Shown here: positions 656-38,992 of the stretch, one piece after another | How positions within the stretch are numbered: the stretch's first letter is position 1 | Layout of the letters: every line of letters starts with the position of its first letter | Source of the DNA: Octopus bimaculoides | Taxonomy: Eukaryota | DNA: 39,797 nt | Direction: 5' to 3' | NCBI RefSeq assembly: GCF_001194135.2 | Contig: NC_068994.1 | Span: 47,173,354 to 47,213,150, forward strand | The notes under the pieces: model-generated | The model's database searches: none | The model's input: the letters and a program-made list of their open reading frames with translations, nothing else | Told to the model about the DNA's origin: nothing | Position numbers and translations under genes: made by a program

Positions 656-1426
656 GTAAGTACAAGACGCTACACTTTCAAGGATTTTTTTTTTGTAGCT
701 GTTTCTTTTCTACATTTATTTTCAGGCAACTCAGTTTTTGTTTTCAGAGAACTTTCTATTGATTTGTAAATATTCCATTCCAGGCAAGAATTTTAATTAA
801 ATTCTAAGACGACTGCTATTTCTAAATTACACATGAAAGTATCAGTATAAGGTTTTTATAGCTGGGTTTCTAAAAGCATGATAAAGAGTTCAAATTCTCA
901 CTACAACCACTGTGTTGTTCTTTGGCCAGACATATAGTTGTTTTTGTGTTTGCCTGACTGATATAAAACTGGTTCTACTTGCTAGCTCACAGGTGAGTGG
1001 TTAGCAATAGAGACGTTCCCTTCAACTGTAAAAACTGTTGTTCCAAACACATCATTCCATCTACTCTAGAATAGAATAATGGAACAAGTATGTTGGTATA
1101 ATGGATTATTGGATATATAACTAACAGTTATGAAATGAAGGATATTTTGCACAATTTTTAAATACCGAATTATCCCTGATTGAACAAAGGTGTTCCAGTC
1201 ATGACCATCCTGTCCTATTGTGCATTTCATTACCTAAAACTACATTATGTCCTTCCTTTTTCAAACAGTAGGGTGTGATCTGAGGAAGACTTGGCTGCTA
1301 TTTTGAGAAGGGTAAGCTATTATGTAGATTCCTTTCCAGTGGCTCAGTGGATGTAAAATAGGTTTTTTTGGGGGGTTTTTTATTTTTTTATTTTTAAATG
1401 TCTAAAATATAAGGTGACTCATCATC

Positions 1427-1639
1427 CTTTCTACTAAAGACACGAGACCTAAAATTTTGGGGACGGGGCTTAGTCAATTACATCTACCCCAGTATTTCAC
1501 TGGCACTTAATTTATCGACCCCGAAAGGACGAAAGGCAAAGTTGACCTCAGTAGAACTTGAACTCAGAATGTAGTGACAGGCAAAATACTACTAAGCATT
1601 TCGTCCGGTGTGCTAATGATTCTGCCAGCTCACCGCCTT
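1427..1639 (-). mobile_element. tRNA-derived SINE, family A (GGCGGTGAGCTGGCAGAA head)
   Basis: Alignable to copies at 25.4-27.0 kb and 35295-35472; shared GCCTTTCRTCCTTTCGGGGTCGATAAA domain. Confidence 0.85.
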
Positions 1640-1944
1640 AACCATCATGATAATAAGGCAAAATTTATTAAGACTGTTAACCTTACCTTCTCAGATCATA
1701 ACTTCTCGTGGTAATGGTCGTGGCGGCAGTGGTGGTGGTGAATAAGAAGTGTCAAAAACTTCATTTCTCTTCACCCCTCCCCCCATCCCAAGGTCTACTT
1801 ACGGAGAAGCGATACAAAAAGATGACAGTGATGAATCAACAGAAGACATGTAAATGCCAAGTTAATTTAAAGAGGTTTATCGCTTTTACATTTCAAACTA
1901 TCTATAAACATATAGCACAAATACATAGTGACGATCCTGTCTAT

Positions 1945-1952
1945 TTTCTCTT

Positions 1953-1985
<33 letters not shown>

Positions 1986-2290
1986 TTTGTACCATCCCCC
2001 TCTCTGTCTTTTTTCTTGTACCACCCCTCTTTGCTGCCTTTTCTCCCTCTCTCTCCTTTTTTGTACCACCCTCTCTCACTTTGCCTACTTTCTCCTTTTT
2101 GTACCACCTTTCTCTCTATCTCTCTTTTTGCCTCCTTTCTCCTCTCTCCTCTTTTGTACCACCCTCTCTCACTTTGCCTACTTTCTCCTTTTTGTACCAC
2201 CTTTCTCTCTCTCTCTTTTCCTCCTTTCTCCTCTCTCCTCTTTTGTACCACCCTCTCTCTCTCTCCCCCTCTCTCCTTTAGTTGGATTCT
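1945..2290. repeat. CT-rich higher-order repeat, 93-bp period with TTTTGTACCACC subunits
   Basis: TTGTACCACCCTCTCTCACTTTGCC recurs at 2061 and 2154. Confidence 0.9.
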
Positions 2291-3458
2291 CTTTCACTTT
2301 ATTTTAACTTATTTACCTCTTGTCATTTCTTTGTTTTCCATTCTGTTTCCCAGAACTGTGGAATCACTGCATATCAGTACTTTATTCATCTGTCCTTTCA
2401 TGGGGCCCTCAAAACTCCTCCGTGTGTGTGTGGTGGGTTTAAGTAACAAGTGATTAAGATCCAGCTTGGATGCAAGTAATATTTCTCACAACTGCTATTG
2501 CTCTTAAGAGTATTTTGTATCATCTTTGGGTATCTACTAATACCTTGGAAGATTGGGCTATTGAGCATTAAATAACCTCATCATTATCATTACATTCATC
2601 ACCAATTCCAACTAGAACTAACCTCTTGAAAATTAAATGTTTTTGCCTTGGGGCACCTACTTAAGGCTAGGTGGACTGGGCTGTAGGACAGTTAAACAAC
2701 ATGGTTATGGACACAAGTTGATGATTCTGGGCCTGAATATTTGATGATTTTATACAATACTCAAATATGTTCTACATTAGATTATTTGCTTTTTTTTAAA
2801 AATATTTATTCGCATTATATTTGCCTTTTTCAGCAATATACTTCTTTTCTCACACAAGTTATGTTTTTCTTCAACACATGCCATACTTTCCTTTTCCACA
2901 CACACACACACACACTAAACATGCCTTCTTCAATGCACCTCATACAAGCTTTCAGTGATAATCTAACTACAGTAATCTATTATGGCATATGGATTATACT
3001 TTTTCAGGCTTTTCTCCTCATCTTTACAATTTGATATATCCTTTGATATTTACACCCTACATTTCAATCAGTTTGTTCTCCAGTCATAAGTGTCTTATCC
3101 CTAGATAGATGGTATTGTGCAAGACTTGAACTAAAAACATTTACAGTGGAACCATGGTTTAGAAATTTAATTCATTCCTGAAGGCCATTTGTCATCTGAA
3201 ATGTTTAGAAATCAAAACAAATTTTCCCATAGGAAATTCAAGAGAAACCACAGCAAATTCAAGCAGGAATGTGTACTGAGTGGAAACTAGACTACAACTG
3301 ATACTCTCTTGCTGGTATGCCCACTTACCACCAACTATTGTGTATTCATTACTCAAGACACTGTTCGTCACAACAAGACATTTTATTCAAAAAATCGTTT
3401 GTAAACCAAGGTTCCACTATATTTCTGAAGACAAGATTTATCATCTGAAAGCTTAAAA

Positions 3459-3773
3459 GTAAAAGACCCCCTTTGGTCATGAATGACCATAGGATTGCAT
3501 CCAGAAAGTTCCCCTTCAAGATACAAGTCGAGGCAAGGTTGCTTATGGAAGACCAGCAGTCACCCATGCATACCAGCCACTGATGTTATCCAAGGCAAAG
3601 GCAAAGGCTGATACAGCTTGGCACCAGTGACATCGCAACTCATTTCTACAGCTGAGTGAACTGGAGCAACATGAAATAATGTGTCTTGCTCAAGAACACA
3701 ACACTCCTCCCAGTCTGGGTATCAAACTCACTACCTCATGATTGTAAGCCCAACATCCTAACTACTGAGCTAC
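3459..3773 (-). mobile_element. CORE-like tRNA SINE, family C
   Basis: Reverse complement aligns along its full length with 22690-23017 and 32052-32300. Confidence 0.85.
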
Positions 3774-4048
3774 TAATAACAGCTCATTTCTCAGATATTT
3801 ACACATTTAACTCTGCAAGTTTTCATTTCCCTTTGAAAAAGACCAATGGCAGTCTCTCTTTTTTTCTCTCTCTCTCTCTCTCCAAAATATACCATCTTCT
3901 GCATTTCTCTGTTTAAAAAAAAAAAATATTTTTGAGATGTATAGAGACAAGCAACAGAGAATTACCTGCAAGTTCTGCACTTACTCGTATACGTGAATGT
4001 TTGTCTCAAAAATAAACCCGCTGTGATTTTTATTTCTGTTTTTGTTAG

Positions 4049-4123
4049 GATGCCAGTAACAGTATGCCTCGGTCCTTAAATGTACCAGACAATAAAAAAG
4101 ATGTAAGCTCAACTAGGGAAGTT
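4049..4123 (+). CDS. SPPL2: Candidate SPPL2 cassette exon (DASNSMPRSLNVPDNKKDVSSTREV); alternative donor gives 4049-4102
   Basis: T-rich tract + TAG acceptor; two GTAAG donors (4103, 4124) giving 54 or 75 nt, both open in phase 0. No homology support. Confidence 0.45.
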
Positions 4124-5179
4124 GTAAGTATTTCTTGCACCCAGTAACCTTGGTTCTTGTGTTCCTTCATGTAGGTTGCATTAATTTAATAGGATTTTTC
4201 ACACATACAACCCTGCACAGCTTCTTTCAAATTTCTTTTCTCTAACATTCTTATCTAATGTGGTGCATTGGCAGAACCATTTGGGCATCAAACAAAAACA
4301 CCTGCAGTATTTAGTTATGACACTGTTCTGAATTCAAAGCCTGACTAGATCAACTTTCATCCTTCTGCAGTTGAGAAAAGTAAGTACCAGGCACATAATG
4401 AGGTTGATTTTGATATTCTTATAAGGCATTCTGGATGGAAATGGAATTGTAACACTGTGGAACAGAATAAAAAATTTTTTTTTTTTTTTTTGGTCTTTGG
4501 TCAGTAAGTGTTATTTCCAATTTGCTTCTATCTAGAAATCAAAGAAAATGACTACCATTCCCTTCAAACTTTGCTTTTGTGACCTGGATATCAATGTTTT
4601 GAAACTGACCTATTTCCCATTACATTTCAGACAGATTCAGGGCTGAGTTGCTGAAGCAAAAATATTGCTATAGCAAATATTCGGCTCAATACCACAGATT
4701 TGCTTATCAGTTGCTTGATCTTAATCACTTGAGCATGTCCTTTAGTGGCTGACAATATGTGCATCTTTGATCATGAGCAGTAGTAGTGGGGGAGCATCAT
4801 AGTCATGTGTTGAGAGGAATTATTGGGGGTTTGAATAAATGTAACAAAAGCAAAGTTTGAAGGAAATATTAGCCATATTTCATACTTTCTAGGGGTAAAG
4901 GAATAAGAAATAATAGTTGCTACCTAAGGATAAAAATCATGTTACACAGTGTAATATAAACCTCCCTCCAATTTTGTCCCCTAATACACAAAACTGTAAA
5001 TCATCCTTCTAGGATTGATAAGATAAAATTCCAGTCAAGTATTGGGGTCAATTTCATCAACTAACCCCTCCATCACCTGAATCCTTCGATAGAAATCCAC
5101 TATATATTTCTCCTTTCCCAGCTAGAGCAGCCATGTATCTCCTTTACACTCCCTTTATCATACTTTGGCTCCCTCAACA

Positions 5180-5750
5180 CCTGGCACAAAGCCACTTGCC
5201 TCAACACGGCACCCCAACTCAGTTGAAGGTTCTTGTCTTGCAAGTTACTTGGTGGCATCCTTAGTACTGGTGCCACAAAAAAAAAAAGTGCACCTAGTAC
5301 ACTCTGTAATGTGATTGGCATTAGAATGGGCATCCAGCCATAGAAAACATGGCACATTGGAGTTCAGCACAGTTCTCTAGTTTGCTAGATCCTGTTGAAC
5401 CAGCCAGCCTATGACCCACATCAGTATCCAGTCCTTGTTGCAGCATGTTGGCTGATGTGCCTCAGTGATCCTGTGTATCATGTCATTGGAGCACCAGCTC
5501 CTGGTAGAGCCTACTGGACGGGTCAAAAGTTAAGGGTATCCAACTGTAAAAACCATACTAAAACAGACCTCGCCAGTGCTAGTTCCATGTAAAATGCACT
5601 CGGTCCATTCTGTAAGGTGGTTGGTGTTAGGAAGGCCATAGAAGCCATGTCAAAACAGGCAGTGAAACCTGGTGCAGTCTTCTGGCTTTGCCAACTCCTC
5701 TCAAACTGTCCAACCCATGCCGGCATGGAAAATGGACGTTAAATGATGTA
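5180..5750 (+). mobile_element. Two adjacent diverged family B-like copies
   Basis: Two GGGCATCCAGC / GTTAGGAAGG-type domains; ends AAAATGGACGTTAAATGATG. Confidence 0.6.
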
Positions 5751-7149
5751 CCCTTTTACTCTTTCATTAGTTTCAATCATTAAATTGTAGCCATGCTAGG
5801 ATACCATCTTCAAGGGTTTCAGTTGTTAATATCGACCCCTTCTTTCATTAACTTATTTTATTAACCTCACATGGGTGAACAGCAAAGTTGACCATTAACC
5901 TAAGTTTAAAGAACCATAACTAAATCCTATCAGGTATTTTTGTTTAATGTTTTAACCAGTTCTGCCATCCTTTCGCCATAGATAGATAGTTGATAGACTA
6001 ATATAGACGAGTGTATAAATGAAAGTGCACTCAACATGTGATGAAGAGTTTTAATATTGGTATTAGCTTAACTTGAAAATGCATTACTTGAAATTTCACT
6101 GATGTAAAATACCCCTGATGTTTTGTAAGCTCACTTCTGAAGTAACGCATTCTGTCTGAATGATCAAGAATTAGAGGTGGTGGTGGTGGTGGGGGGGGGT
6201 CACATCTATGAAAAATAAAGTAATGCTTCTCAGAGTGTAGCTGATTCCCATCCTAGGTCACCTGAGGAAATGTACGTGTTTTAGGCTATTTAGTTCCCAG
6301 TACACTTACACTCCTACCTCCCCTTCAAACTACCCATTTCTGGCCTTTCTGCTGTCATTGCTCCTTTTCCTAATCCCTTCTTTGGTCTACAAACCTTAGG
6401 TTACTGAGTACTCCAGTTTTGGTGCCACAAGAAAACATCTCACTTTATTCTGTAAAGTGGTTGGTGATAGAAAGGGCATCCAACTGTGGAATTTATAGCC
6501 AAGTGGACTGGAGCAACATGAAATGAAGTGTTTTGCTCAAAAACATAATGTACAGCTGATCATGAGTGCAACTACTTAACCACTAGGCCATACACACTCA
6601 CATTATATAATGTGTCCCCTTTTTGCATGCTGGCATGCATTGGACAGAGCTTCTTCAAGCAGTATTCTGCGGAAGAACGCCCTTCCTGACACCAACATTT
6701 GTCAGTTTAAGTACTTTGATTCAAGAGTTTTCATGGGTTAAGTCACTGAAACACACACACCCACAGACATATGCATGCATACAGCCCTCTGTACAGTTTC
6801 TGCCTATTAAATTTTTCCTACAAGTCATAGGTAGAAGTCACTTGCTCAAGGTGCCTTGCATTGGGATTGTACCTAAAATTACACAACTGCAAAGCAAACT
6901 TTTTAACCACACAGCCAATGTATATATTTTCTCACATACATACACACATAACAAGGCTTTGGTCAACCTGAAGCTAGATGATATGCTTGCCCAATGTTGT
7001 GCTTCGGCACCAAATTTAGGACAATGTGATTGTCAAATGAACTCCTTAATCACAGTCATACCTGTTACCCAAGAAATGAGTTGAAATTGTGTTAGTCAAC
7101 TCTACCCTACATTACTCTTACGCAAATAGTTTGTGCCAAATCCATTTCT

Positions 7150-7320
7150 GAGGTGGTGAATTGGCAGAGCTGTTAGATCATCAGACAGAATGCTTTGCAG
7201 TATTTGTTCTTATTCTATGTGCTCTGAGTTCAAATCCTGCTGAGGTCAATATTGCTTCTCAATCCTTTTGGAATTAAGAATAAGTACCAGTCCAAGGTGC
7301 AACATTGGCTGAGCTGTAAG
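7150..7320 (+). mobile_element. SINE family A, diverged
   Basis: GTGGTGAATTGGCAGAG head, GAGTTCAAATCC B-box, ATAAGTACCAG. Confidence 0.7.
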
Positions 7321-8442
7321 AACATTGGATCAACTGCCTCGTATTATTTATTCCAGCTCTTTGCATTCTGAGCTCAATCCAACCATGACCTACCAAGGTG
7401 GTAGACATAACCCATCACCCAGTTTAACACTACCACTTGACACCTTCAGCATTTTAGCAGAGTGCCCTGTCCAACACCCAGGCCAGCTTTTATCTGGTTT
7501 GAAGTTACTTTTGTCCTTTCCTCCCTCCAGTCTCAGTGACCATATAATGGGGCCTAGGTACTGACGTCTCCCACTGGCTAAAAGAAAAAAAAAATTGTTA
7601 AATAAAATCCTAATTTATTTTTGCATGTGCTTTTTGTTTCGTTAACAATTAATGTGGAACAATGTCTGTGATATTTAACCACAAAGTGATAGTTCTTTTG
7701 TTGTTGTTGTTGTTCTTTTTTTAATACTTCTAGAGCAAAATAGACTGTAGTGCCTTTTACGAACTGAGCTAACAAAATAGGAGCCACCCTTTATTTCATG
7801 GTTAGTTGACTGATTGATTACTTGATAAGAAAGGACGTTGTGAATTCCAGCTTCATCACTTTCCATTGTCGTTAGTTGTATTGTCTGCAAAGAAAACATC
7901 AAGGAACATTGTTTGACTTGTCTCATTCTGTATGGAGGACAAATAGACTGCATTCTTAGAATGTGGTTGTGTTGTTAGGAGTTAAAAAGGCCGTTGTAAA
8001 TTCAAACTTTACTACCTCAACAGTTACTGAGTTAGAAGCTTTTAAGGTACTTTATACCGGTTTCTTTATGATTTTCTCTCTCTCTCTCTCTCTCACATAC
8101 ACACATAAACAATCACAGGTAGAATAGATTTATCATCTTCATCATTTTACATCCACTTTCCCTGGTGTCATAAATTGGATAGATTATCACAGTCCAAATC
8201 ATATCTCATTTAGAGAACCACATCTCACTCCTACAAGAAATGAAAATATGCAGCGGTTTTTGTGGGTTTTTTCATTTTCTTTTTTTTTTTAATGAAAATA
8301 AGGGTTCTTGTGAACATGCAGATTCATCACAATTTTTTTTTAAAGATATACATACTTGGTTTTTTTTTTTGTTTGTTTTTTTTTTTTCTGTTACAATGTA
8401 CACACTATTGGGCTTGCTTTGTTTGCTTAAATCCACTGAAAG

Positions 8443-8451
8443 CTTTGCTGG
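8443..8451 (+). CDS. SPPL2: Candidate 9-nt microexon (LCW in phase 0)
   Basis: 95-nt AG-free T-rich zone, two TGC motifs, AAG acceptor, TGG|GTAAAC donor (moderate). Confidence 0.3.
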
Positions 8452-8631
8452 GTAAACATGCCCTCATTTGAATGACTGCTGCTGGGTGATCAGACTCTTA
8501 GCTGAACACACTATTTTGTGAATGTTTTGTTCGGTGAAGGTTTCTTTTGATGAACATGTTCGGTTAAAGTGAACATTTTGTTATCCAGTGAACAAACTCC
8601 TTTAAGTAAACAAAGCTTTGGATAAGAGATA

Positions 8632-8790
8632 NNNNNNNNNNNNNNNNNNNNNNNNNNNNNNNNNNNNNNNNNNNNNNNNNNNNNNNNNNNNNNNNNNNNN
8701 NNNNNNNNNNNNNNNNNNNNNNNNNNNNNNNNNNNNNNNNNNNNNNNNNNNNNNNNNNNNNNNNNNNNNNNNNNNNNNNNNNNNNNNNNN
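8632..8790. other. Assembly gap (others: 12281-12346, 15827-15836, 29320-29329, 33158-33416)
   Basis: Runs of N; three fall in the long SPPL2 intron and could hide exons. Confidence 1.
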
Positions 8791-8902
8791 CAGAAGAAAC
8801 AGTGTGACTCCCATAATCTTTACAAACCTTCCTAAGTCTGGTGATTAATGCTTAATTTTTTTTTATATAAACTGAGAAATCTGGATGTCAATACATGTGT
8901 GT

Positions 8903-9250
8903 GTGCAGGCATTGCTGTGAGGTTTTGGGTTCAGTCCCACTGCTTGGCACCTTCACTGTCTTTGTGTCTTCTACTATAACCTACCAAAACCTTATAAATG
9001 GATTTGGTAGATAGAAACTGAAAGGTTATTGTGTGTGTGTGTGTGTGTGTAGGTGCAGGCATGGCACTATAGTTAAGAAGCTAGCGTCTCAAGCATGTGC
9101 TCTTGGTTTCAGTCCCACTGTGTGGCACCTTGGGCGAGTGTCTTCTACTATAGCCCCAGAAACTGAAAGCAGCCCATCGTATATGTATGTTTATTATATA
9201 TGTGTGTGCATCTTTTGTCTTGACATCATGTACATGAGCATCACATGATG
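8903..9250 (+). mobile_element. Two tandem family D SINEs joined by (GT)n
   Basis: Both carry GGTTCAGTCCCACTG..GGCACCTT..GTGTCTTCTACTATA. Confidence 0.8.
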
Positions 9251-9609
9251 TTCGTTTACTGTTTTTCCCTGATAAAATATTACCTTACTTGGAAACGGGC
9301 GAGGGTTGGCAACAGGAAAGGTATCCAGCTATAGAACAATATCTGCATCAGCAAATTCTGCTGGCTCATGCAATCCTGGAAAAAGGGACATTAAAATGAT
9401 GATGGAGTGTGTGTGTGTGTGTGGGAGCATGCAGCTTGCTTAGTTTTGCAAAGGTGGCAGTGATGTTGTCATTTCTCCTATCAACAAATCACCCATTTAC
9501 TTTGTGCCTTCGAAGCCAGGTGAAATAAGAAATCCTTTCTTCGAAAAACAAGTATAGGTTAAAAACAGGAAGAGCATCCAGCTGTAAATCAATGCCGCAG
9601 TAACTGACT

Positions 9610-9807
9610 CAGTGGTTCTCAATCTTTTTTTTCGTACCTATGGACCCCTTAGATTTCTGTTTTACTCAGGTGGACACCCCGCCCCATAGCCATCTGATGT
9701 TTTAAAAAATCCTATTTTATAATTAACTATTATTAGGTATTTGCTTAAAATGATTGAAATATTTTGTGTATTGTAGAAGTATAACCAACCCCAGTTGAAA
9801 ACCACTG
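9610..9807. mobile_element. hAT-type MITE
   Basis: CAGTGGTTCTCAA...TTGAAAACCACTG termini; interior similar to 15872-16146; 8-bp flanks match 5/8. Confidence 0.7.
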
Positions 9808-9917
9808 ATCTAACCCATGTAAGCATATAACAAAAAAAAAAAACAACATAATCAAAAACTTACATGTATATAACTGAAAAAATTTGGAGTCGAATATAAC
9901 TAATGTGTGTATATATA

Positions 9918-10243
9918 TGTAGTGAAACTACCTATCGCCATTAGATACAAAACTGCTATCGTGTGGTACACGGAACAGATCTCAAAGAGAAACTGAACCG
10001 AGACAAATTTGCCGCTGAATTAATGCTACTTTTATAGTTGATAATAGGCTCACCAGACAACAGAAAAATACTCTATCACGTGACCTTATTAGGGGCTGTG
10101 ATTGGTCAGTTTGCGTTCTGGCGGGAACGGTTCGAAGAAGTTGCCGATTCGAATAATGATCAGTCACGTGATGACAAGGTTGATGTTTTCCGTTACGCCC
10201 GTGCTTGTTTATATTTAAATGAGAAGAATGGCGATAGGTAGTT

Positions 10244-10251
<8 letters not shown>
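9918..10251. mobile_element. MITE with 23-bp perfect TIRs, inserted in a (TA)n tract
   Basis: TAGTGAAACTACCTATCGCCATT (9920-9942) is the exact reverse complement of 10227-10249; CpG-rich interior. Confidence 0.88.
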
Positions 10252-10272
<21 letters not shown>

Positions 10273-10278
<6 letters not shown>

Positions 10279-10410
10279 TCGTTTAACGTCTGTCTTCCAG
10301 GCTAGCATGGGTGGAACAGTGCCACAAGAGCTGGCCAGGCCGAAGCCTGCACCAGACTTCTGTGTCTGTTTTGGCAGGATTTTTACAGCTGGATGCCCTT
10401 CCTAACACCA
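10273..10410 (-). mobile_element. Family B 3' fragment abutting (TA)n
   Basis: CATCGTTTAACGTC...CAGCTGGATGCCCTTCCTAAC. Confidence 0.75.
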
Positions 10411-10633
10411 ATTTATTTATTTATATCTGCTTATATAGTGACTGAAAATTGTCTGCATTTACTAGCGTCTGAATAATTTCCTTTTAATGGGTTATGTCTT
10501 TATAATCCTTCATTTGCATATCTTCATATTTGAATAACCAGGATTATTCTGTTAATGATTGCACTGAGCAATAATTTTTTCTTTCTTTTTTTCTTCTTTC
10601 TAATCCTAACAATGCTTTCCATTTAACAACAAG

Positions 10634-10639
10634 GAACAG
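10634..10639 (+). CDS. SPPL2: Candidate 6-nt microexon GAACAG (EQ)
   Basis: 63-nt AG-free zone, pyrimidine tract, CTAAT/CTAAC branch-like motifs, TGC at -21, perfect CAG|GTAAGT donor. Inclusion yields EQ-LP, like the EKLP of vertebrate SPPL2. Confidence 0.6.
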
Positions 10640-10958
10640 GTAAGTGATATTAACTCCTCTTTGTCTTTCTATTCACTGCAAAATTATAAAAGTTTCTGTC
10701 CTGCACTTTGGTATGTCTTCAAGTGTTTAAAAATTAAATTATAGCAACAATAACATTAAGTGGCTCTAGTTCTGTTGCTTTCTGTTGATCTGCTGATATT
10801 TTGGCATGCAGTGAAGGCTACTTTTATCGGTGTCATCGTTCAGAGCTGAAGATTTCTTTTGTCCATTAAACAAAACAAATATTTGTCTCAGCGTTTGAGG
10901 GAATCATCAGTTTCTGCTTTTTTCTGTCTTTTTTCTGCTTTTATCCCATTCAAACCAG

Positions 10959-10985
10959 CTGAAACCTACTACCATACTGTTTCAG
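10959..10985 (+). CDS. SPPL2: Candidate 27-nt microexon (LKPTTILFQ in phase 0)
   Basis: 46-nt AG-free pyrimidine tract with two TGC, CAG acceptor, CAG|GTAATT donor, frame-preserving. Confidence 0.4.
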
Positions 10986-12495
10986 GTAATTGGTCTATTG
11001 CTCTTAAACGAAAAAGAGGCAAAATAAAAAAAATCACAATCTCACAGTTAGTTATGCCATTCCCACACACATCTTTATTATTTTCATCTTCTCACTAGCA
11101 TGACTGCAGCCTCATGGCTGAAGCACACACAAGAATAAAAATAACATGCCTGGCACTCAGGGTGTTTGTTATGAATGCTTTCTGTGTCATTATCTCTTCT
11201 CTAATTCAGCTTTTAATTTTTCTAATCTGCTGGCTTAACATATATAACATTATATAGACAAACAGTTACTATATTGTTTTTTTTTGTTTTTTTAAATAAA
11301 ACCTATCCTGCAGCTGCATTGAGTTCAATCAAGCTGATTGGTTAAAAATATGATCCTCACTAGGTGAACCTTGAAAGTTATATATTTTTATCTAAAATAA
11401 ATAAGTGATTATGATTAATGATGGGGGAATATATTACAATAAACACTATGGCAACACTGGTTGACTTGCAGCATGCTAAAAGTTATTGTTTCCTACTTTA
11501 TCAATTCAATTCAGGACCCTTTTGCAAATAACATGTCATATGTCTATATTGTACTATTAATTAAACCCCTGTTTTTAAACAGACGTCCAGCATCTCACCT
11601 TTGAATGTCTTGTAATTCTGAACTTTTTATCACAACTAGCTTTGGTAGAAGCTGGTTCTATTATTATCAAAATTATCTGGAATTTCATTGATTTAAAAAT
11701 GTTTTTATTTTTGAAATGTTTATGTATTCTTCTCCTGCCTCTGCAGATTTATTTCTTCATTTGCTAAACAGTAACTATTTTACAGCAGTTCATATATGTA
11801 TGTGTATAGACGTATATGTGTTATTTTTTTTAAATGGTCTTGTTTTATTTAACTAAATCAATTACTTTTGTATGTCTATTTTAATAATATTACTGTTTTT
11901 TTTCTAGGCTAATCCAACAATTTTTCTGTATTTTAAATCCCTGCAACTTTTTTCCTTCTTTGTGAGAGGTCTAACATGTTTGTCAGCTTCACAGTACTTC
12001 ATACATATGTGTTTGTGCATATAAATGGAAGGAAAAGTACTCAGTACATAGGAGTTTCTTTATAGGTATAGCTGAATCTGTGTGCCAGTGAGTGTCTGAG
12101 GGACCTTATTAAAACAAAACCTGACAAGTCAACAGCGAGATGTTAAAACAAGCACAACATTTCATCTTGCTTTCTCTTTCCATCAAACAAAATCGGTCTG
12201 ACTCTTCACTTGAACATTATAGTTTTTATCAAATTCAACATGTTGCACCTATAATGAAGTTTATATATATATATATATATNNNNNNNNNNNNNNNNNNNN
12301 NNNNNNNNNNNNNNNNNNNNNNNNNNNNNNNNNNNNNNNNNNNNNNATATATTTGGTCAATCAAAATCTATCCCTCATTTCTCAGTAATGGTTCAATCTT
12401 CAAGTTTCCTTCTGTTTTTCTTCCCCCGACCCATTTTCTCCTCAAATAAATGTTTTGGAAATTAATTTAACACTTTTTCTTAGATATCTATTTAA

Positions 12496-12838
12496 CCCTT
12501 TCAGTCATAGATGAAAAAGTACAACTATTTTAAAATTTTATTTTTTATTTATATTAAAATACAAGGTAAATTAACACATATTGAGTAAACTTCCAAAGAA
12601 TTCAATATGCTTAATTTTTGACATGGATAAATAATTTTGCTAACACTAGGTAAAAATAATACTAATTTACTTACAACCTGCAGCCATCCTCTATGACTTG
12701 TATGCAAACACTGAGTCAGAATCACGTGGTCTTGGTTATATATGTGTTTTAGAGGTGTCCAATGAATTGGTAACTGTGACTCAATTATAATTTACACTGA
12801 AAAATTGTCCAATACATTGGACAAAGTGACTGAAAGGG
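12496..12838. mobile_element. piggyBac-type MITE
   Basis: TTAA-CCCTTTCAGTCA...TGACTGAAAGGG-TTAA: 12-bp perfect TIR with TTAA target duplication. Confidence 0.8.
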
Positions 12839-13844
12839 TTAATGATTTTTAGTGACCTTGTTTTGTATAGTAATTTTTATCATGGAACTATAAAGTAATA
12901 TCTGTCTCTCAAGATTGAATACCTGCCTTTTTGAGTCCAATTCTTCACTATGGTTAATGATGTATTTTATCTTCCTGATCAAATCTGTTTCTATGATCCA
13001 CCGTTTTTTTTTTGTTTTGATTTTTTAGTTTTGTAGTTTTATTACATCATGCAAGAAAAAACAACAGTACCTTGGTCTTTCTCTGATATGCCTTACCTTC
13101 TTAAATTGCTGAAATCAGTGTTATTGGTGTGTTTTAACTTGGACTTGAGAATTGGGACAGGAGTGATGCAGGACTTGAGGAAGAATGATCAGATAATGTA
13201 TATAGTGGAACACAATAGGCTGGAGGGAGAGAAAGTAAGACACTATTTGCTAGTTCAGAGGAGTTAAAATTGTTGTAGTAGTGGTAACAGAGACAGAAGG
13301 AGGGGCCACAGCATATTGCTGAGTTAATGATTGCAGCATGCTAATGAATACATGTTTGCTAGGCAGTTTTGGGATTGCGCCTTTATTCATGTCAGGGATC
13401 GATCTGTTGCATCCCAGATATATGCAATTTCCAATTGTTGGGAATTGCACTTGTCCCTTGTCAGCACTTTATCAACACCTTTTTTTTATTTATTTTTTTT
13501 TATTATTATTTTTTTTTTTTTATTTTTTTTTTTTATATATTTGTCTAGATCTGATGGTGAAGTCTATTTTCTGAAACGGTTTTAGTTAAGATTGGGGTTA
13601 CTAACTGCATCAACTTTGAAAAGAAAATTTTCAAAATAAGTTTGGAATTTGACATAATGATTTATATTGTGTTGTTGCTGGAATCCCCTGGTTATGTTGA
13701 TGTTGCTATCACTTTTTTCCCTTTTTTTTAAGTCTGGTATTTATTCTATCAGTCTCTTTTGCCAAACCACTAAATTACAGGGATGTAAACAAACCAAAAC
13801 TTCTTGTCAAGTGGTGCTAGGACACACACACACATACACAATGG

Positions 13845-14005
13845 GCTTCCACACAGTTTCTATCTACCAAAATTCACTCACAAGGCACTGGTCATCCTGG
13901 GAGCTATAGTAGAAGACGCTTACCCAAGGTGCCATATAGTGGGACTGAACCCAAAACCACATGGTTGCATTAGCAAACTTCTTAACCACACAGCCATTAC
14001 CTGTG
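13845..14005 (-). mobile_element. SINE family D
   Basis: GCTATAGTAGAAGAC...GTGGGACTGAACC...AACCACACAGCCA, the reverse of family D. Confidence 0.8.
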
Positions 14006-14862
14006 CCTCTAAGAGTTTACTCCCACCCCACCTGCCAAAGAAAATGTCTAAACAGTTATATATCAGAGGTTCACCAAACAATCACAAATCTAGTGGCACA
14101 ATGCTGATCTTGGTTAAAGATCAATTGTTTTCGGATGCAAATAATGACACTTACTGGAATTAATAAGTTAGTAACAGTTTTAGGTTTGCATGAATTGAAT
14201 TGGAAATGAAAACAGGTGTTGTTGCTGTGTTAGGAGATGAAGATGAAATAAGGATGGTTGATTTAGTTAAAGCTTGTTATTTGCTATGGAGCTCTTCCTC
14301 ATTACTCTTCCATGAAGGCTTGATCTTTTTTTTTAATCATCATAATCCTCATTATTATTAGTCTCTTTGTTTGTCCAGTAAGCTCTTAGACCACTACTAT
14401 GGACTGCCAAAGATTCTCACTCCATCTTTCTGCTGCTTCATTCCCTTCTGAGAAGAGATTGTCCATATTGATCTATTTGTTTGGTGCTATCTTTTTCCTG
14501 TCACTGTCTTCATCTTCATCTCCTTGCTTGCTTAGTTGTTTTCAGAAAACTATGTAGTCCCTGTCTCTCTTTGTCTCTTATACTACTATTACAACTGATC
14601 TTCTTCCTCTGTATACCATTTCTATCCAGATCCAACTTCTCTCATTACTCTCAACACCCTCTGCCTCTCCCACTAACTTTGTATTGTATTATTGTGTTGT
14701 ACACATTGCGACTCCTCATTACTCCTCTTCCTCCTGAGTTGATGGTGGGAGGTACAAAGAATATGGGACCTGCCCCTCTTCCTTAGGATGAAATAATTAA
14801 GCGAAAACAAAAGATAGCCTCTCTTACCTGTTAATGCAATGTTTCTAAAACGCAGAAACATA

Positions 14863-15025
14863 ATCATCATCATCATTGTTTAACGTCTGCTTTCCATGCT
14901 AGCATGGGTTGGACGATTTGACTGAGGACTGGTGAAACCGGATGGCAACACCAGCCTCCAATCTGATTTGGCAGAGTTTCTACAGCTGGATGCCCTTCCT
15001 AATGCCAACCACTCAGAGAGTATAG
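14863..15025 (-). mobile_element. Young family B retroposon 3' part, (GAT)n tail
   Basis: 3 mismatches over about 95 bp against the reverse complement of 16667-16765. Confidence 0.88.
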
Positions 15026-15304
15026 CCAACCACTCATCTGTTCAAAACACATTGAGGCTATGATTAGACCTTATTAATTAGCTTTGTAGTTGTTCTTTAT
15101 TTCCTAACAGTTGGAGAGGCTGATAAAAAACTAATCTCCTTAAAACCACTTCTCAGTTATGGATTAATCAGTAACCTGAGGATCTCTTATGTAGATGATG
15201 GAGGTGGAGTGCATCAATTCTAAGAAGCCCCTACCACATCAGTATAATAACTCTTTCCATAACTTCAACACATCAGCCTTTCTGTGGATATTTGACTAAG
15301 TAGT

Positions 15305-15630
15305 TCATTTCCTAACCACAAGTTCAGTTCCTCTGCTTGACACCTTAAGGAAGTGTCTTCTTCTGTAGACCTGGTCCGGCCAAAGCTTTGTGAATAGATT
15401 TGGTAGATGAAATCTGAAAAGAGTCTGTGTGTCCATGTGATGGCTGTAACCATTTCTAGGCTTTTGTAGAAACGTGTCCAACCAAGGGGAATTAGGTGCG
15501 GAAACCTTTCTTGGAAATAGGTGAGGGTTGTCAACCGGAAGAGCATCCAGCTTGAGGAAATCTGCCTCAATGAATTCCATTTGATACATGCGAGCATGGA
15601 AAAGGGGATATTAAAACAATAATGGTAGTG
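15305..15630. mobile_element. Family D (-) fragment joined to a family B-related (+) fragment
   Basis: AAGTGTCTTCTTCTGTAG/CCAAAGCTTTGTGA-type segment then GGAAGAGCATCCAGC...GCATGGAAAAGG tail; strand of each part tentative. Confidence 0.5.
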
Positions 15631-15871
15631 ATGATGGCCTCCATCGAATGTTCTCACTGCATTTTGTTATATAACATGCATGTTCAGAGAAAGATATGTA
15701 TCTGTTTCACACTCTTCGGAATACTATTGCAAGCATCTCGGCCCAAAACCAAAAGCATAGAACATCGCAAACACCTTGGTCCAAATTCAAAAGCTTTGAG
15801 GAAGTCAGTCAGTCAAGATGGGGGGGNNNNNNNNNNAAGAAGAAAATGACAAAACTGAAGATAATCTGAAC

Positions 15872-16146
15872 TAGGGGTTCTCAACCATTTTTTAATTCAT
15901 GGACCCCTTTGATTACTATTTTATTCTAGTGGACCCCCATAGCCATTCAATGTTTAAAAAGTAGTCTTATAGAAACTTTTTCCAAAATTCCAATTTTGTT
16001 TCTCACACATTAACTTGTGTAGGTTGAACTATGTAAAATGTTAGAAACAAAAAACAAACCTAGCTGTTTCTTGCAATACATATCAATACATATATCTAAA
16101 GTGAAATTTTGATATATGTTGCATGGACTCCAATTGAGAACTACTG
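15872..16146. mobile_element. hAT-type MITE, same family as 9610-9807
   Basis: TAGGGGTTCTCAACC...TTGAGAACTACTG termini; 8-bp flanks ATCTGAAC/ATCTAAAT match 6/8; shared ATGGACCCC and CCCCATAGCCAT. Confidence 0.75.
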
Positions 16147-16627
16147 ATCTAAATAAAACATGCAAAAGAAAAAAATAAAATGAAGTGTTCTTTACTACTT
16201 CTTATTTGTCTTGCGTCAACCCCAGTTTTGATTTTGTTTTGATTTTTGTTCTGTATTGGTAATGTGGTGAGGGAGTTGGAATTCATTATATTTTTCTTTA
16301 TTCCAGATAACAAACTTTTGGATATATTTCGTTTTCCCTTCTATTTAATTTCAATTTTTACTTTACAACTTAAATGTCATGCAATTTTGTCAATACACAG
16401 ATCAAGTCACTAGAGAGTATACATACACATATGTATACACACATATATTGCATACTTTTATTATTAATTTACTGGTTTTCATCACTGGGCTGTGGCCACG
16501 TTGGTGGATACCACCTTGTATAGTTTATTTACATCAATCCGAGTACTAATCTTTTATTCACCGGAAATTATTTTATCAGTCCCAGAACAATATAAGAGAA
16601 AGTGAACCTGAGTGAGATTTGAACTTG

Positions 16628-16666
<39 letters not shown>

Positions 16667-16671
<5 letters not shown>

Positions 16672-16765
16672 GCCTGGTGTTGCCATCCGGTTTCACCAGT
16701 CCTCAGTCAAATCGTCCAACCCATGCTAGCATGGAAAGCGGACGTTAAACGATGATGATGATGAT
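16667..16765 (+). mobile_element. Young family B retroposon, 5'-truncated, after (TA)n
   Basis: ...CCATGCTAGCATGGAAAGCGGACGTTAAAC(GAT)n; near-identical to the 14863 and 21474 copies. Confidence 0.9.
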
Positions 16766-16802
16766 CAGTGAAGCTAATCCTTTTTGTTTTTCTTATTTTC
16801 AG

Positions 16803-16902
16803 CTCCCTCTAGTTTTCCGAGTGCCTCCTTTGTTTCCGTCTCATCCCTCAGTGTGTTTTGTACAGGAGTCGCTTCTGGGCTTTGGCGACGTCATATTACC
16901 AG
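16803..16902 (+). CDS. SPPL2: SPPL2 exon with catalytic GxGD motif (LPLVFRVP...SLLGFGDVILPG)
   Basis: CTAAT branch-like motif (16774), pyrimidine tract, CAG acceptor, CAG|GTATGG donor; 100 nt phase 0/1; LGFGD motif. Confidence 0.97.
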
Positions 16903-17823: not shown

Positions 17824-17901
17824 GTGTACTGGTTGTCTACAGTCATATTTTTGATATCTACGTCCGAGCAAAGAAACTCTATCTCATTATTTCTATTTGT
17901 G
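17824..17901 (+). CDS. SPPL2: SPPL2 exon (GVLVVYSHIFDIYVRAKKLYLIISIC)
   Basis: CAG acceptor, GTG|GTAAGC donor, 78 nt phase 1/1; aligns to the GLLIAYCRRFD...YYVSS region of SPPL2A. Confidence 0.93.
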
Positions 17902-18864: not shown

Positions 18865-19022
18865 GTTATTTACTTGGATTGCTTCTTGCCTTTGTTGCTT
18901 TAACTCTAATGCAAGCTGGCCAGCCAGCGTTGTTGTACCTTGTACCTACTGTGCTCTTGTCAGCTATCATTCCATCTTGTTGCCGAGGAGAATTTAGAGA
19001 AATGTGGACTGGAGATTTTTTG
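18865..19022 (+). CDS. SPPL2: SPPL2 exon with PAL motif (GYLLGLLLAFVALTLMQAGQPALLYLVP...EMWTGDFL)
   Basis: TAG acceptor, TTG|GTCAGT donor, 158 nt phase 1/0; GQPALLYLVP signature of the SPP/SPPL family. Confidence 0.97.
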
Positions 19023-20852: not shown

Positions 20853-21180
20853 GTGATACCCGTGCCAGTGGCATGTAAAAAGCACCATCCAAACGTGGCC
20901 GATGCCAGCGCCACCTTGACTGGCTTCCATGCCGGTGGCATGTAAAAAGCACCAACCGATCGTGGCCGTTGCCGTTGCCAGACTCTCCTGGCCCGTGCCG
21001 GTGGCATGTAAAAAGCACCCACTATACTCACGGAGTGGTTGGTGTTAGGAAGGGCATCTAGCTATAGAAACACTGCCAAATCAGACTGGAGCCTGGTGCC
21101 GCCTCCTGGCTTCCCAGACCCCAATAGAACCGTCCAACTCATGTTAGCATGGAAAACGGATGTTAAACGATGATGATGAT
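20853..21180 (+). mobile_element. Longer family B SINE with three internal 25-bp repeats
   Basis: (G/A)TGCC(A/G)GTGGCATGTAAAAAGCACC at 20862, 20929 and 20995; GTTAGGAAGGGCATC domain; (GAT)n tail. Confidence 0.85.
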
Positions 21181-21473: not shown

Positions 21474-21625
21474 TCATCATCATCATCATCATCATCGTTT
21501 AACGTCCGCTTTCCATGCTAGCATGGGTTGGACGATTTGATTGAGGACTGGTGAAACCGGATGGCAACACCAGGCTCCAATCTAATTTGGCAGAGTTTCT
21601 ACAGCTGGATGCCCTTCCTAACGCC
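21474..21625 (-). mobile_element. Young family B retroposon
   Basis: 1 mismatch over about 99 bp against the reverse complement of 16667-16765. Confidence 0.9.
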
Positions 21626-23838: not shown

Positions 23839-23976
23839 AATTTTCTAAAAGCCTCACCTCCAGCTGATGATAGATCTCTCTCCCAGGAGACCCTCCCAGA
23901 TGACGTTGAAACACCACCCATTTCTTCAAAGACTGACCAGTCTAAAAGAAATGAAAACGACCACCTACTAAATTAG
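23839..23976 (+). CDS. SPPL2: SPPL2 terminal coding exon, cytosolic tail ending ENDHLLN*
   Basis: Pyrimidine tract + CAG acceptor, phase 0 compatible, 45 codons then TAG. The acidic/Pro/Ser-rich tail is plausible but has no homology support. Confidence 0.75.
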   Translation, partial: NFLKASPPADDRSLSQETLPDDVETPPISSKTDQSKRNENDHLLN

Positions 23977-33041: not shown

Positions 33042-34163
33042 GTAATCACTTGATTTTTTGTTTGTTTATTTTAATATATTTTCCAGAACTTGTGTGTGTG
33101 TGTGTGTATATATGTATATCATATATATATATATATATATATATATGATAATGAATTNNNNNNNNNNNNNNNNNNNNNNNNNNNNNNNNNNNNNNNNNNN
33201 NNNNNNNNNNNNNNNNNNNNNNNNNNNNNNNNNNNNNNNNNNNNNNNNNNNNNNNNNNNNNNNNNNNNNNNNNNNNNNNNNNNNNNNNNNNNNNNNNNNN
33301 NNNNNNNNNNNNNNNNNNNNNNNNNNNNNNNNNNNNNNNNNNNNNNNNNNNNNNNNNNNNNNNNNNNNNNNNNNNNNNNNNNNNNNNNNNNNNNNNNNNN
33401 NNNNNNNNNNNNNNNNGTATATAAGGTAGAAAGTATGGTGAGTGATTACATGTGGTTGAATATATACAGAAAAAAAATAAGATTAAAAAACACAGATTTG
33501 TTTTACAAGCCTAAAAAATATATTAGAATCATAATTGCAAAAGTATTATACAATATTGTACAAAATAAGAATTTTTTCTTCCAACATAATAACCTGTTTC
33601 ACTATCGCTTTTCAAATTAAGAGTTTTGGATGAATTTCCTAATTAGACATTCAGAAATTCATCCAAAACTCAAAATTTGAAAAGTGATAGTGAACCAGTT
33701 ATTATGTTGGAAGAAAAAAAATCTTATTTTGTACAATATTGTATAATACTTTTGCTATTAGATTCTAATATATTCTTTAGGCTTGTAAAACAAATCTGTG
33801 TCTTTTCATCTTATTTCTTTCCGTATATATGCATATATTTATACACACACACACAAATATATATCAAAGACCACATATATACATATTTGTTTTGCAAGAT
33901 TTTTGATGTGAAATCGTGTGTTGAAAATGGCTGATAGTTAGCAAGGTGAGACACACATAAGAAAGAAGAAAGCAAAGGACCACTGATGAGGTCACAGAAG
34001 TGTGACGAAAGAACTCTGGCCGAAATAGGATTAATGTAATATAATGTAATATAAAGCTGAAGCAAATTAACATAAATATACAGTGCGTGTGTTTTTATTG
34101 GCTAAACTGGCAATATGACCATCCCCAAGTACAACAACCACATATATATTTCTTTCTTTGCAG

Positions 34164-38719: not shown

Positions 38720-38992
38720 TACTCTTTTACTCATTTCAGTCATTTGACTGTGGCCATGCTGGAGCACTGCCTTTAGTTGAACAATTTGACTCCAGGACTT
38801 ATTCTTTGTAAGCCTAGTACTTATTCTATCGGCTCCTTTTGCAAAAGTGCTAAGTTACGGGGATGTAAACACACCAACATCGGTTGTCAAGTGATGGTGA
38901 GGGGGGACAAACACAGACACACAAACATCATCATCATCGTTTAACATCCACTTTCCATGCTGGCATGGGTTGGATGGTTTGACTGAGGACTG
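38720..38992. mobile_element. Family E SINE-like element followed by a family B (-) tail
   Basis: TACTTATTCTATC...AAGTTACGGGGATGTAAAC...TTGTCAAG is shared with a partial copy near 13735-13835; (CAT)n B tail from 38927. Confidence 0.7.

Follow-up and report, generated by a model that had tools for sequence, protein, structure and literature searches.

An annotated exon and a probable six-nucleotide microexon in the loop preceding the GxGD motif of an octopus SPPL2A-like protease

A 39,797-nucleotide stretch of the Octopus bimaculoides genome (NCBI RefSeq assembly GCF_001194135.2, contig NC_068994.1, positions 47,173,354–47,213,150 of the forward strand), hereafter the window, holds on its + strand the 3′ half of an SPPL2A-like gene encoding an intramembrane protease of the SPPL2 type. 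An earlier note, made from the sequence by itself, had read window positions 656–16802 as a single 16-kb phase-0 intron carrying four optional AG...GT-bounded segments, here A to D, which could be joined in up to 24 combinations as a microexon system in the catalytic loop between transmembrane helices 6 and 7 (TM6 and TM7). Here we show that A is an ordinary annotated coding exon of 75 nucleotides (nt) and not a microexon, and we propose that the 6-nt segment C is most likely a genuine microexon and that B and D are chance matches. Coding exons were called by tblastn with a human SPPL2B query, after which the splice sites were read directly; the exons and the four proposed segments are listed below, with slashes here and throughout marking exon boundaries.

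596–655, + strand: coding exon NGESVMVDVATGKSGHNSES, 60 nt, phase 0 to 0, donor TCA/gtaagt; TM6a helix region
4049–4123, + strand: segment A, 75 nt, DASNSMPRSLNVPDNKKDVSSTREV; acceptor tttttgttag/, donor GTT/gtaagt
8443–8451, + strand: segment B, 9 nt, CTTTGCTGG, encoding LCW
10634–10639, + strand: segment C, 6 nt, GAACAG, encoding EQ (Glu-Gln)
10959–10985, + strand: segment D, 27 nt, encoding LKPTTILFQ
16803–16902, + strand: coding exon LPLVFRVPPLF...SLLGFGDVILP(G); loop-6 hairpin (strands β1 and β2) and catalytic GxGD motif in TM7
17824–17901, + strand: coding exon (G)VLVVYSHIFDIYVRAKKLYLIISIC(G); TM7 to TM8
18865–19022, + strand: coding exon with the QPALLYLVP (PAL) motif; TM8 to TM9
23839–23976, + strand: last coding exon, NFLKASPP...DHLLN and stop codon

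The gene encodes an SPPL2-type protease of the SPP/SPPL Peptidase A22B family, as the earlier note had recognized. The 204 residues encoded in the window match Pfam PF04258 (Peptidase_A22B) with E=2.4e-35 (123 bits; cut-off 23.3), and the older RefSeq model of the protein, XP_014780374.1, matches the same family at 199.5 bits (cut-off 23.3) and carries PF02225 (PA domain; 28.8 bits, cut-off 23.9) in the portion encoded 5′ of the window. The best match in the Protein Data Bank (PDB) is human SPPL2A (E=7e-67). The catalytic GxGD motif is present as GFGD in exon 16803–16902, with G73, G75 and D76 invariant in the family alignment (A1), and the PAL motif before TM9 is present as QPALLYLVP in exon 18865–19022. 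The flanking exons 596–655 and 16803–16902 had been placed correctly, and the junctions at 655 and 16803 are both phase 0.

Segment A is present in all three gene models that cover the region: the current RefSeq protein XP_052828559.1, its older counterpart XP_014780374.1 and UniProt A0A0L8GJR5. The current model reads ...HNSES/DASNSMPRSLNVPDNKKDVSSTREV/LPLVF..., with the same junctions in A0A0L8GJR5, and joining 596–655 to A and then to 16803–16902, 17824–17901, 18865–19022 and 23839–23976 gives its exact C terminus. Compared with a representative protein library, the A-containing translation returns a 100% identical, single-stretch, whole-query match to a 588-residue protein, which is XP_052828559.1 itself ('signal peptide peptidase-like 2A [Octopus bimaculoides]'; locus L006, GCA_001194135.2, CM046614.1:47139960-47199329, within which the window starts at position 33395). 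The 90% identity cluster of this protein has five members, all from O. bimaculoides; none skips A or joins 655 directly to 16803, and none uses the shorter 54-nt form or includes B or D. As A is an annotated coding exon, the interval 656–16802 comprises at least two introns and not the one that had been proposed. Exon A offers two in-frame GT donors separated by 21 nt, GAT/gtaagc after position 4102 and GTT/gtaagt after position 4123. The proximal donor (GT at 4103), which would give the 54-nt form, scores above the distal one with a generic matrix; the models use the distal.

Three assembly gaps (8632–8790, 12281–12346 and 15827–15836) lie between A and exon 16803, all in non-coding sequence, and none touches a candidate segment. 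Because both RefSeq C termini are reproduced residue for residue, no model residue is missing across the gaps and the coding sequence is collinear and in frame, leaving room only for small exons that the three gaps could still conceal.

The four segments lie where the earlier note had located them, bounded by AG and GT, with lengths divisible by three (75 (or 54), 9, 6 and 27 nt) and no stop codon in the SPPL2 frame. In size, C, B and D qualify as microexons (3–27 nt, frame-preserving); A, at 75 or 54 nt, is too long. Splice sites were scored with generic matrices that use human frequencies and were not trained on cephalopods. On this scale the acceptors of three real exons of the gene score 4.7–6.3, and those of A, D, C and B score 4.9, 0.2, −3.4 and −5.1, respectively; weak donors follow B (gtaaac) and D (gtaatt). 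Use of these standard matrices as the sole filter was abandoned, since they give an acceptor score of −3.4 to C, which is likely to be a real microexon.

As a set, the four segments do not rise above chance. The interval 656–16802 contains 4489 AG..GT segments of 3–100 nt, 671 of them in frame and stop-free. Both splice sites are at least as good as those of the weakest candidate in 189 segments, 29 of which are in frame and stop-free; the corresponding counts are 274 and 47 on the antisense strand of the same interval, and 294 and 46, and 263 and 52, on the two strands of the region at 20–39.8 kb. The earlier note had itself cautioned that agreement in frame was no independent test. The presence of UGC near the acceptor is likewise uninformative: TGC is found within −40 to −5 of the acceptor twice for B and once each for C and D, and it precedes 42% of all 799 AG sites at least once. 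Picking out AG..GT segments that fit the frame by visual inspection of a long intron gives a high rate of false microexons. A repeat or transposon origin of the candidates was considered and dropped, self-BLAST showing unique sequence except for low-complexity runs.

Other segments of this kind, absent from the proposed set and from all gene models, score at least as well as B, C and D. They include 930–992 (63 nt, in frame, stop-free, acceptor 4.1, donor 9.7) and 4371–4379 (9 nt, LRK, in frame, stop-free, with flanks ttctgcag/ and /gtaagta), together with two frame-breaking AG..GT segments, 2354–2432 (79 nt) and 993–999 (7 nt). The last of these is probably the 7-nt candidate that the earlier note had discarded.

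Segment C stands apart from B and D. The older RefSeq model XP_014780374.1 reads ...STREV/EQ/LPLVF..., that is, A followed by C, and its exact C terminus is given by 596–655, A, C and the four downstream exons, with C required for the match. The pattern AG/GARCAR/GT occurs at C and nowhere else in the window; the expectation from shuffled sequence is 0.41 for both strands of the 39.8 kb, which scales to about 0.065 for the + strand of 4124–16802. Upstream of C lie an all-pyrimidine 15-mer, then a CTAAC branch-point-like site and then one UGC; there is also a 63-nt AG-free zone, and the donor is the consensus gtaagt. Under microexon-style criteria (no AG for 30 nt or more, one or more TGC, a 15-mer with 13 or more pyrimidines, and an intronic donor scoring 1 or higher), only four segments of up to 30 nt pass in 656–16802, the best of them C, and control strands yield 0–2. 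The description of all four segments as well-bounded accordingly holds for A and, by these microexon criteria, for C; it fails for B and D at their weak donors.

The residues encoded by C are those expected at this position of the family. In SPPL2 homologues an ATG motif is followed by 6–9 residues, mostly ending in E-Q (in many invertebrates) or E-K (in vertebrates), and then by LP; among invertebrates, the commonest arrangement has E-Q immediately preceding LP. In a MAFFT alignment, the Glu encoded by C falls at a column with conservation in 90% or more of the sequences. A Glu at position −2 is kept without C as well, both in the junction of A by itself (REV/LP) and in a hypothetical direct junction (SES/LP), so the conservation does not require C. 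Taking the gene model, the flanking sequence and the family motif together, we regard C as probably a genuine exon, in which case a 6-nt microexon restoring the family E-Q-L-P motif appears to have dropped out of the current RefSeq model. Its loss between RefSeq releases could reflect either optional use or the failure of an aligner on a 6-nt exon. Short-read aligners commonly miss exons of this size.

Segments B and D fail the same criteria at their donors. As the last exon before LPLVF, moreover, B would turn the conserved Glu-x into Cys-Trp and D would turn it into Phe-Gln. We judge both to be chance AG..GT segments, D being the less unlikely of the two on account of its pyrimidine- and UGC-rich upstream sequence.

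To place the insert in the protein, octopus exons were aligned by HMMER to human SPPL2a (PDB 9k92/9k93, 520 residues). The junction corresponds to K382/L383, which sets the insertion point between helix TM6a and strand β1, in the loop preceding GxGD. Cryo-electron microscopy of human SPPL2a assigned the catalytic residues to Asp351 and Asp412, described TM6a as a short helix, containing Met369 and Ala373, that caps the inhibitor, and revealed in loop-6 a preformed antiparallel β-hairpin in which deletion of β1 or β2 abolishes cleavage (PMC12745688). An AlphaFold2 model of the 204 window-encoded residues with A and C (mean pLDDT, the predicted local distance difference test, of 72.6) has a helix at residues 5–10, a low-confidence coil at 11–50 (block-mean pLDDT 52–60), strands at 51–54 and 70–73 and the helices TM7–TM9. 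It reproduces the helix, coil, hairpin and TM7–TM9 of the human structure, to which elements the octopus exons also align. A and C together are thus predicted to form a disordered, hydrophilic insert of 27 residues between TM6a and β1. Unlike the human protein, in which the two catalytic Asp residues are 61 residues apart, the octopus protein would have a loop about 25–27 residues longer, an estimate from family spacing, as the octopus exon carrying YD is missing from the assembly. Loop length at this junction varies across the family.

Vertebrate SPPL2A provides a precedent at exactly the same junction. A short form (...GNNEK/LPVV) and a long form with 18–19 additional residues are known, the insert being NDGNLVEATGQPSAPHEK in primates, TQGNMVEIPAEPQPPAEK in Nothobranchius furzeri and NTGNYLMGLAVEPVAHNEK in shark, and both forms are annotated in a single species in N. 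furzeri (P0073 and P0119, 'isoform X2'). A 2025 paper validated a skipped-exon event in human SPPL2A by reverse transcription PCR (RT-PCR) and cited percent-spliced-in (PSI) data from VastDB (PMC12592727). The primers of that study translate to IMVELAA and PVSILGFG and bracket the K382/L383 junction; from their positions we infer that the human event is the vertebrate 54-nt cassette exon. A splicing event in quail Sppl2a was rejected as a precedent, as it concerns exon 16 and is unrelated to this loop.

The octopus and vertebrate genes therefore both carry an extra small exon at the junction of TM6a and the β-hairpin. Each insert sits at the same phase-0 junction, is small and hydrophilic, lies between TM6a and β1, and falls between ...E-x and LP[VL]V, the vertebrate cassette itself ending in E-x so that Glu stays at −2. 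The vertebrate exon is 54–57 nt long, in contrast to 75 nt for octopus A. Use of the proximal donor of A would give 18 residues, the same length as the cassette, but ending in K-D rather than E-x. In vertebrates it is the short form whose structure has been solved (520 residues, PDB 9k92), whereas in octopus the insert is in every model and a skipped form is undocumented. Homology between A and the cassette exon was tested and not accepted, as local BLOSUM62 scores of 12–20 were not significant (shuffle p 0.16–0.85); the two exons may share an origin or may have been gained independently.

Segment C also resembles the neural microexons that depend on SRRM3/4 (eMIC): it is 6 nt long and in frame, its proximal acceptor is weak, a pyrimidine tract and a UGC near −20 lie upstream, its donor matches the consensus, and it encodes part of a surface loop of a conserved domain. 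A is too long for this class, and the UGC is to be read against the 42% of AG sites here that one precedes. SPPL2 is not mentioned in the main text of a 2026 preprint whose vast-tools analyses cover O. bimaculoides, and our literature search found no paper pairing SPPL2 with microexons. The earlier statement that no description was known is to be qualified on two counts: public annotation, in RefSeq, already includes A and C, and for vertebrate SPPL2A alternative splicing at the same junction has been described and is annotated as a cassette.

Collectively, these observations make it probable that 656–16802 is not one intron but holds the annotated exon A and, most likely, the microexon C, with B and D being chance. 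On this account, A and C would lengthen the TM6a–β1 linker by 25–27 residues beside the active-site hairpin, with a Glu kept two residues before the Leu-Pro that opens the β1 exon whether SES, REV or EQ precedes it. B and D would be the kind of AG..GT match that a 16-kb AT-rich intron supplies by the dozen. The insert may change the geometry or flexibility of TM6a and the hairpin and, through them, may affect substrate handling.

Several points weigh against this account. C is absent from XP_052828559.1 and A0A0L8GJR5, and an aligner guided by proteins could, in principle, have inserted Glu-Gln so as to match homologues. The inclusion of A and of C comes from gene models made by other groups. 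A has no detectable similarity to sequences outside O. bimaculoides, and no second cephalopod sequence covering A was found. Finally, genuine microexons, C among them, have poor acceptor scores, so that low scores by themselves do not exclude B or D.

The strongest competing explanation is that only A is real and that C is an artefact of the 2015 RefSeq build, for example a tiny exon fitted to homologues, and rightly dropped since. In its favour, C is absent from both other models, REV/LP already has Glu at −2 and leaves C unneeded for that residue, and the probability of a chance AG/GARCAR/GT in 4124–16802 is roughly 0.06. We nonetheless consider this unlikely, given that C is flanked like a true microexon, from the all-pyrimidine 15-mer, CTAAC, UGC and 63-nt AG-free zone to the gtaagt donor, and that E-Q before LP is the commonest invertebrate state; the general tendency of aligners to miss 6-nt exons would, moreover, explain why C is lost from the newer build.

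An extension of the favoured account, in which both A and C are exons, is that the length of the octopus TM6a–β1 linker is set by regulated splicing, with C and perhaps A being optional and tissue-dependent, as a counterpart of the vertebrate cassette. We hold this to be a tentative proposal, on balance doubtful. If true, an independently evolved or anciently shared cassette would point to a recurrent, splicing-controlled length switch beside the SPPL2 active-site hairpin, and regulation in both octopus and vertebrates would provide a testable handle on loop-6 length and substrate handling.

It is very improbable that A is itself a prediction artefact and that the true mRNA uses the direct 655-to-16803 junction with the usual family loop length. 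The direct junction would give ATG, eight residues and LP, a family-typical arrangement seen in the distant homologue P0003, and A has no homologue elsewhere and is predicted to be disordered; against this, A is found in three models that derive from two assemblies and two annotation pipelines, its splice sites at both ends equal those of neighbouring real exons in quality, and the direct junction is missing from every record of the 90% identity cluster. Least credible of all is the original proposal of four optional microexons, combinatorial, tissue-specific and possibly SRRM3/4-dependent in tuning the TM6–TM7 loop, for although all four segments are in frame and stop-free, B, C and D have UGC, pyrimidine-rich upstream sequence and long AG-free zones, the loop tolerates length variation across the family and a vertebrate SPPL2A cassette exon lies at the same junction, A is in every covering model and the direct junction, B and D are in none, 29 equally good in-frame stop-free segments occur, a rate matched on the antisense strand, UGC lies upstream of 42% of the AG sites as a whole, B and D have weak donors, and either of these two segments as last exon would replace the near-invariant Glu-x before Leu-Pro. 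What survives of the four segments as exons is A, in three models, and C, in one.

The loop was described as linking the YD and GxGD aspartates, which holds for the family, and the interval does precede GxGD; YD itself is in neither the window nor the assembled gene. All octopus models lack the TM6 exon bearing it, reading ...NLRIPSLK/NGESVMV... where P0003 has ...NLRLPSLKIISILLVLLLLYDVFFVFITPLLTSNGESVMV..., and tblastn did not find the exon anywhere in the 59-kb locus L006. In the region L006 31627–33989, a gap of 1195 N (L006 32200–33394; CM046614.1, about 47,172,159–47,173,353) separates the two flanking exons and runs up to the first base of the window, precisely at the expected position of the YD exon, which is therefore probably unassembled rather than lost. 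The annotated octopus protein looks catalytically dead; the cause is probably this assembly gap and the real protein is probably active.

Elsewhere in the same gene, a segment of 17 residues, TNLKKINEDVSESPPTR, distinguishes the UniProt entries A0A0L8GJY7 (416 residues) and A0A0L8GK67 (399 residues); it is an annotated optional exon of the N-terminal half (L006 ~15457–15552) outside the window. After ...IPSLK, both entries run on into the intron.

In word-indexed protein searches, the direct-junction and full-inclusion peptides matched only Sepia fragments and one distant intronless homologue; neither the octopus proteins nor a junction-covering transcript came up, and the protein look-up gave no transcript-derived entry. 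An exact look-up of an ORF from the window likewise yielded no contig of the same species. In the five Sepia contigs (L001–L005) only the LPLVF exon is present, about 80% identical in coding sequence, and the introns do not align with those of octopus. In one, an RNA-seq contig of Sepia esculenta (L001; SRR20545808, 1–60), the LPLVF exon follows on the 3′ end of a far-upstream exon, ...GLYFLYDYL, in which 21 of 30 bases are identical to octopus ...GLYFFYNYL+G. The join is out of frame, with TAG directly before CTC CCA, and reflects either a non-productive isoform that skips several exons or a chimera of assembly; a second contig (L002; SRR5319792, 1–40) retains the last 7 of these 30 upstream bases. 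The same 30 nt had been considered as a homologue of D and were rejected, as they are the 3′ end of the ...GLYFLYDYL exon. The distant homologue P0003, from a 406-kb ENA contig, has one open reading frame (ORF) of 257 residues spanning YD, the loop, GxGD and PAL, which suggests an intron-poor genome or a retrogene; its loop of ATG, eight residues and LP equals the octopus direct junction in length.

The window also contains repeats. CT-rich tandem repeats with periods of 34, 45 and 56 nt occupy positions 30–480, just 5′ of the NGES exon, and others of 47, 52 and 93 nt lie at 2035–2279; both arrays yield long, spurious Leu/Ser/Pro-rich ORFs. A scan for tRNAs found none. An interspersed repeat core, CATGCTAGCATGGAAAGCGGACGTTAAACGATGATGATG, occurs in five copies with 0–3 mismatches, where none is expected by chance:

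14868–14906, − strand: repeat core CATGCTAGCATGGAAAGCGGACGTTAAACGATGATGATG
16722–16760, + strand: repeat core CATGCTAGCATGGAAAGCGGACGTTAAACGATGATGATG
21140–21178, + strand: repeat core CATGCTAGCATGGAAAGCGGACGTTAAACGATGATGATG
21487–21525, − strand: repeat core CATGCTAGCATGGAAAGCGGACGTTAAACGATGATGATG
38929–38967, − strand: repeat core CATGCTAGCATGGAAAGCGGACGTTAAACGATGATGATG

The repeat is probably an element resembling a short interspersed nuclear element (SINE), and one copy ends 42 nt before the acceptor of the LPLVF exon.

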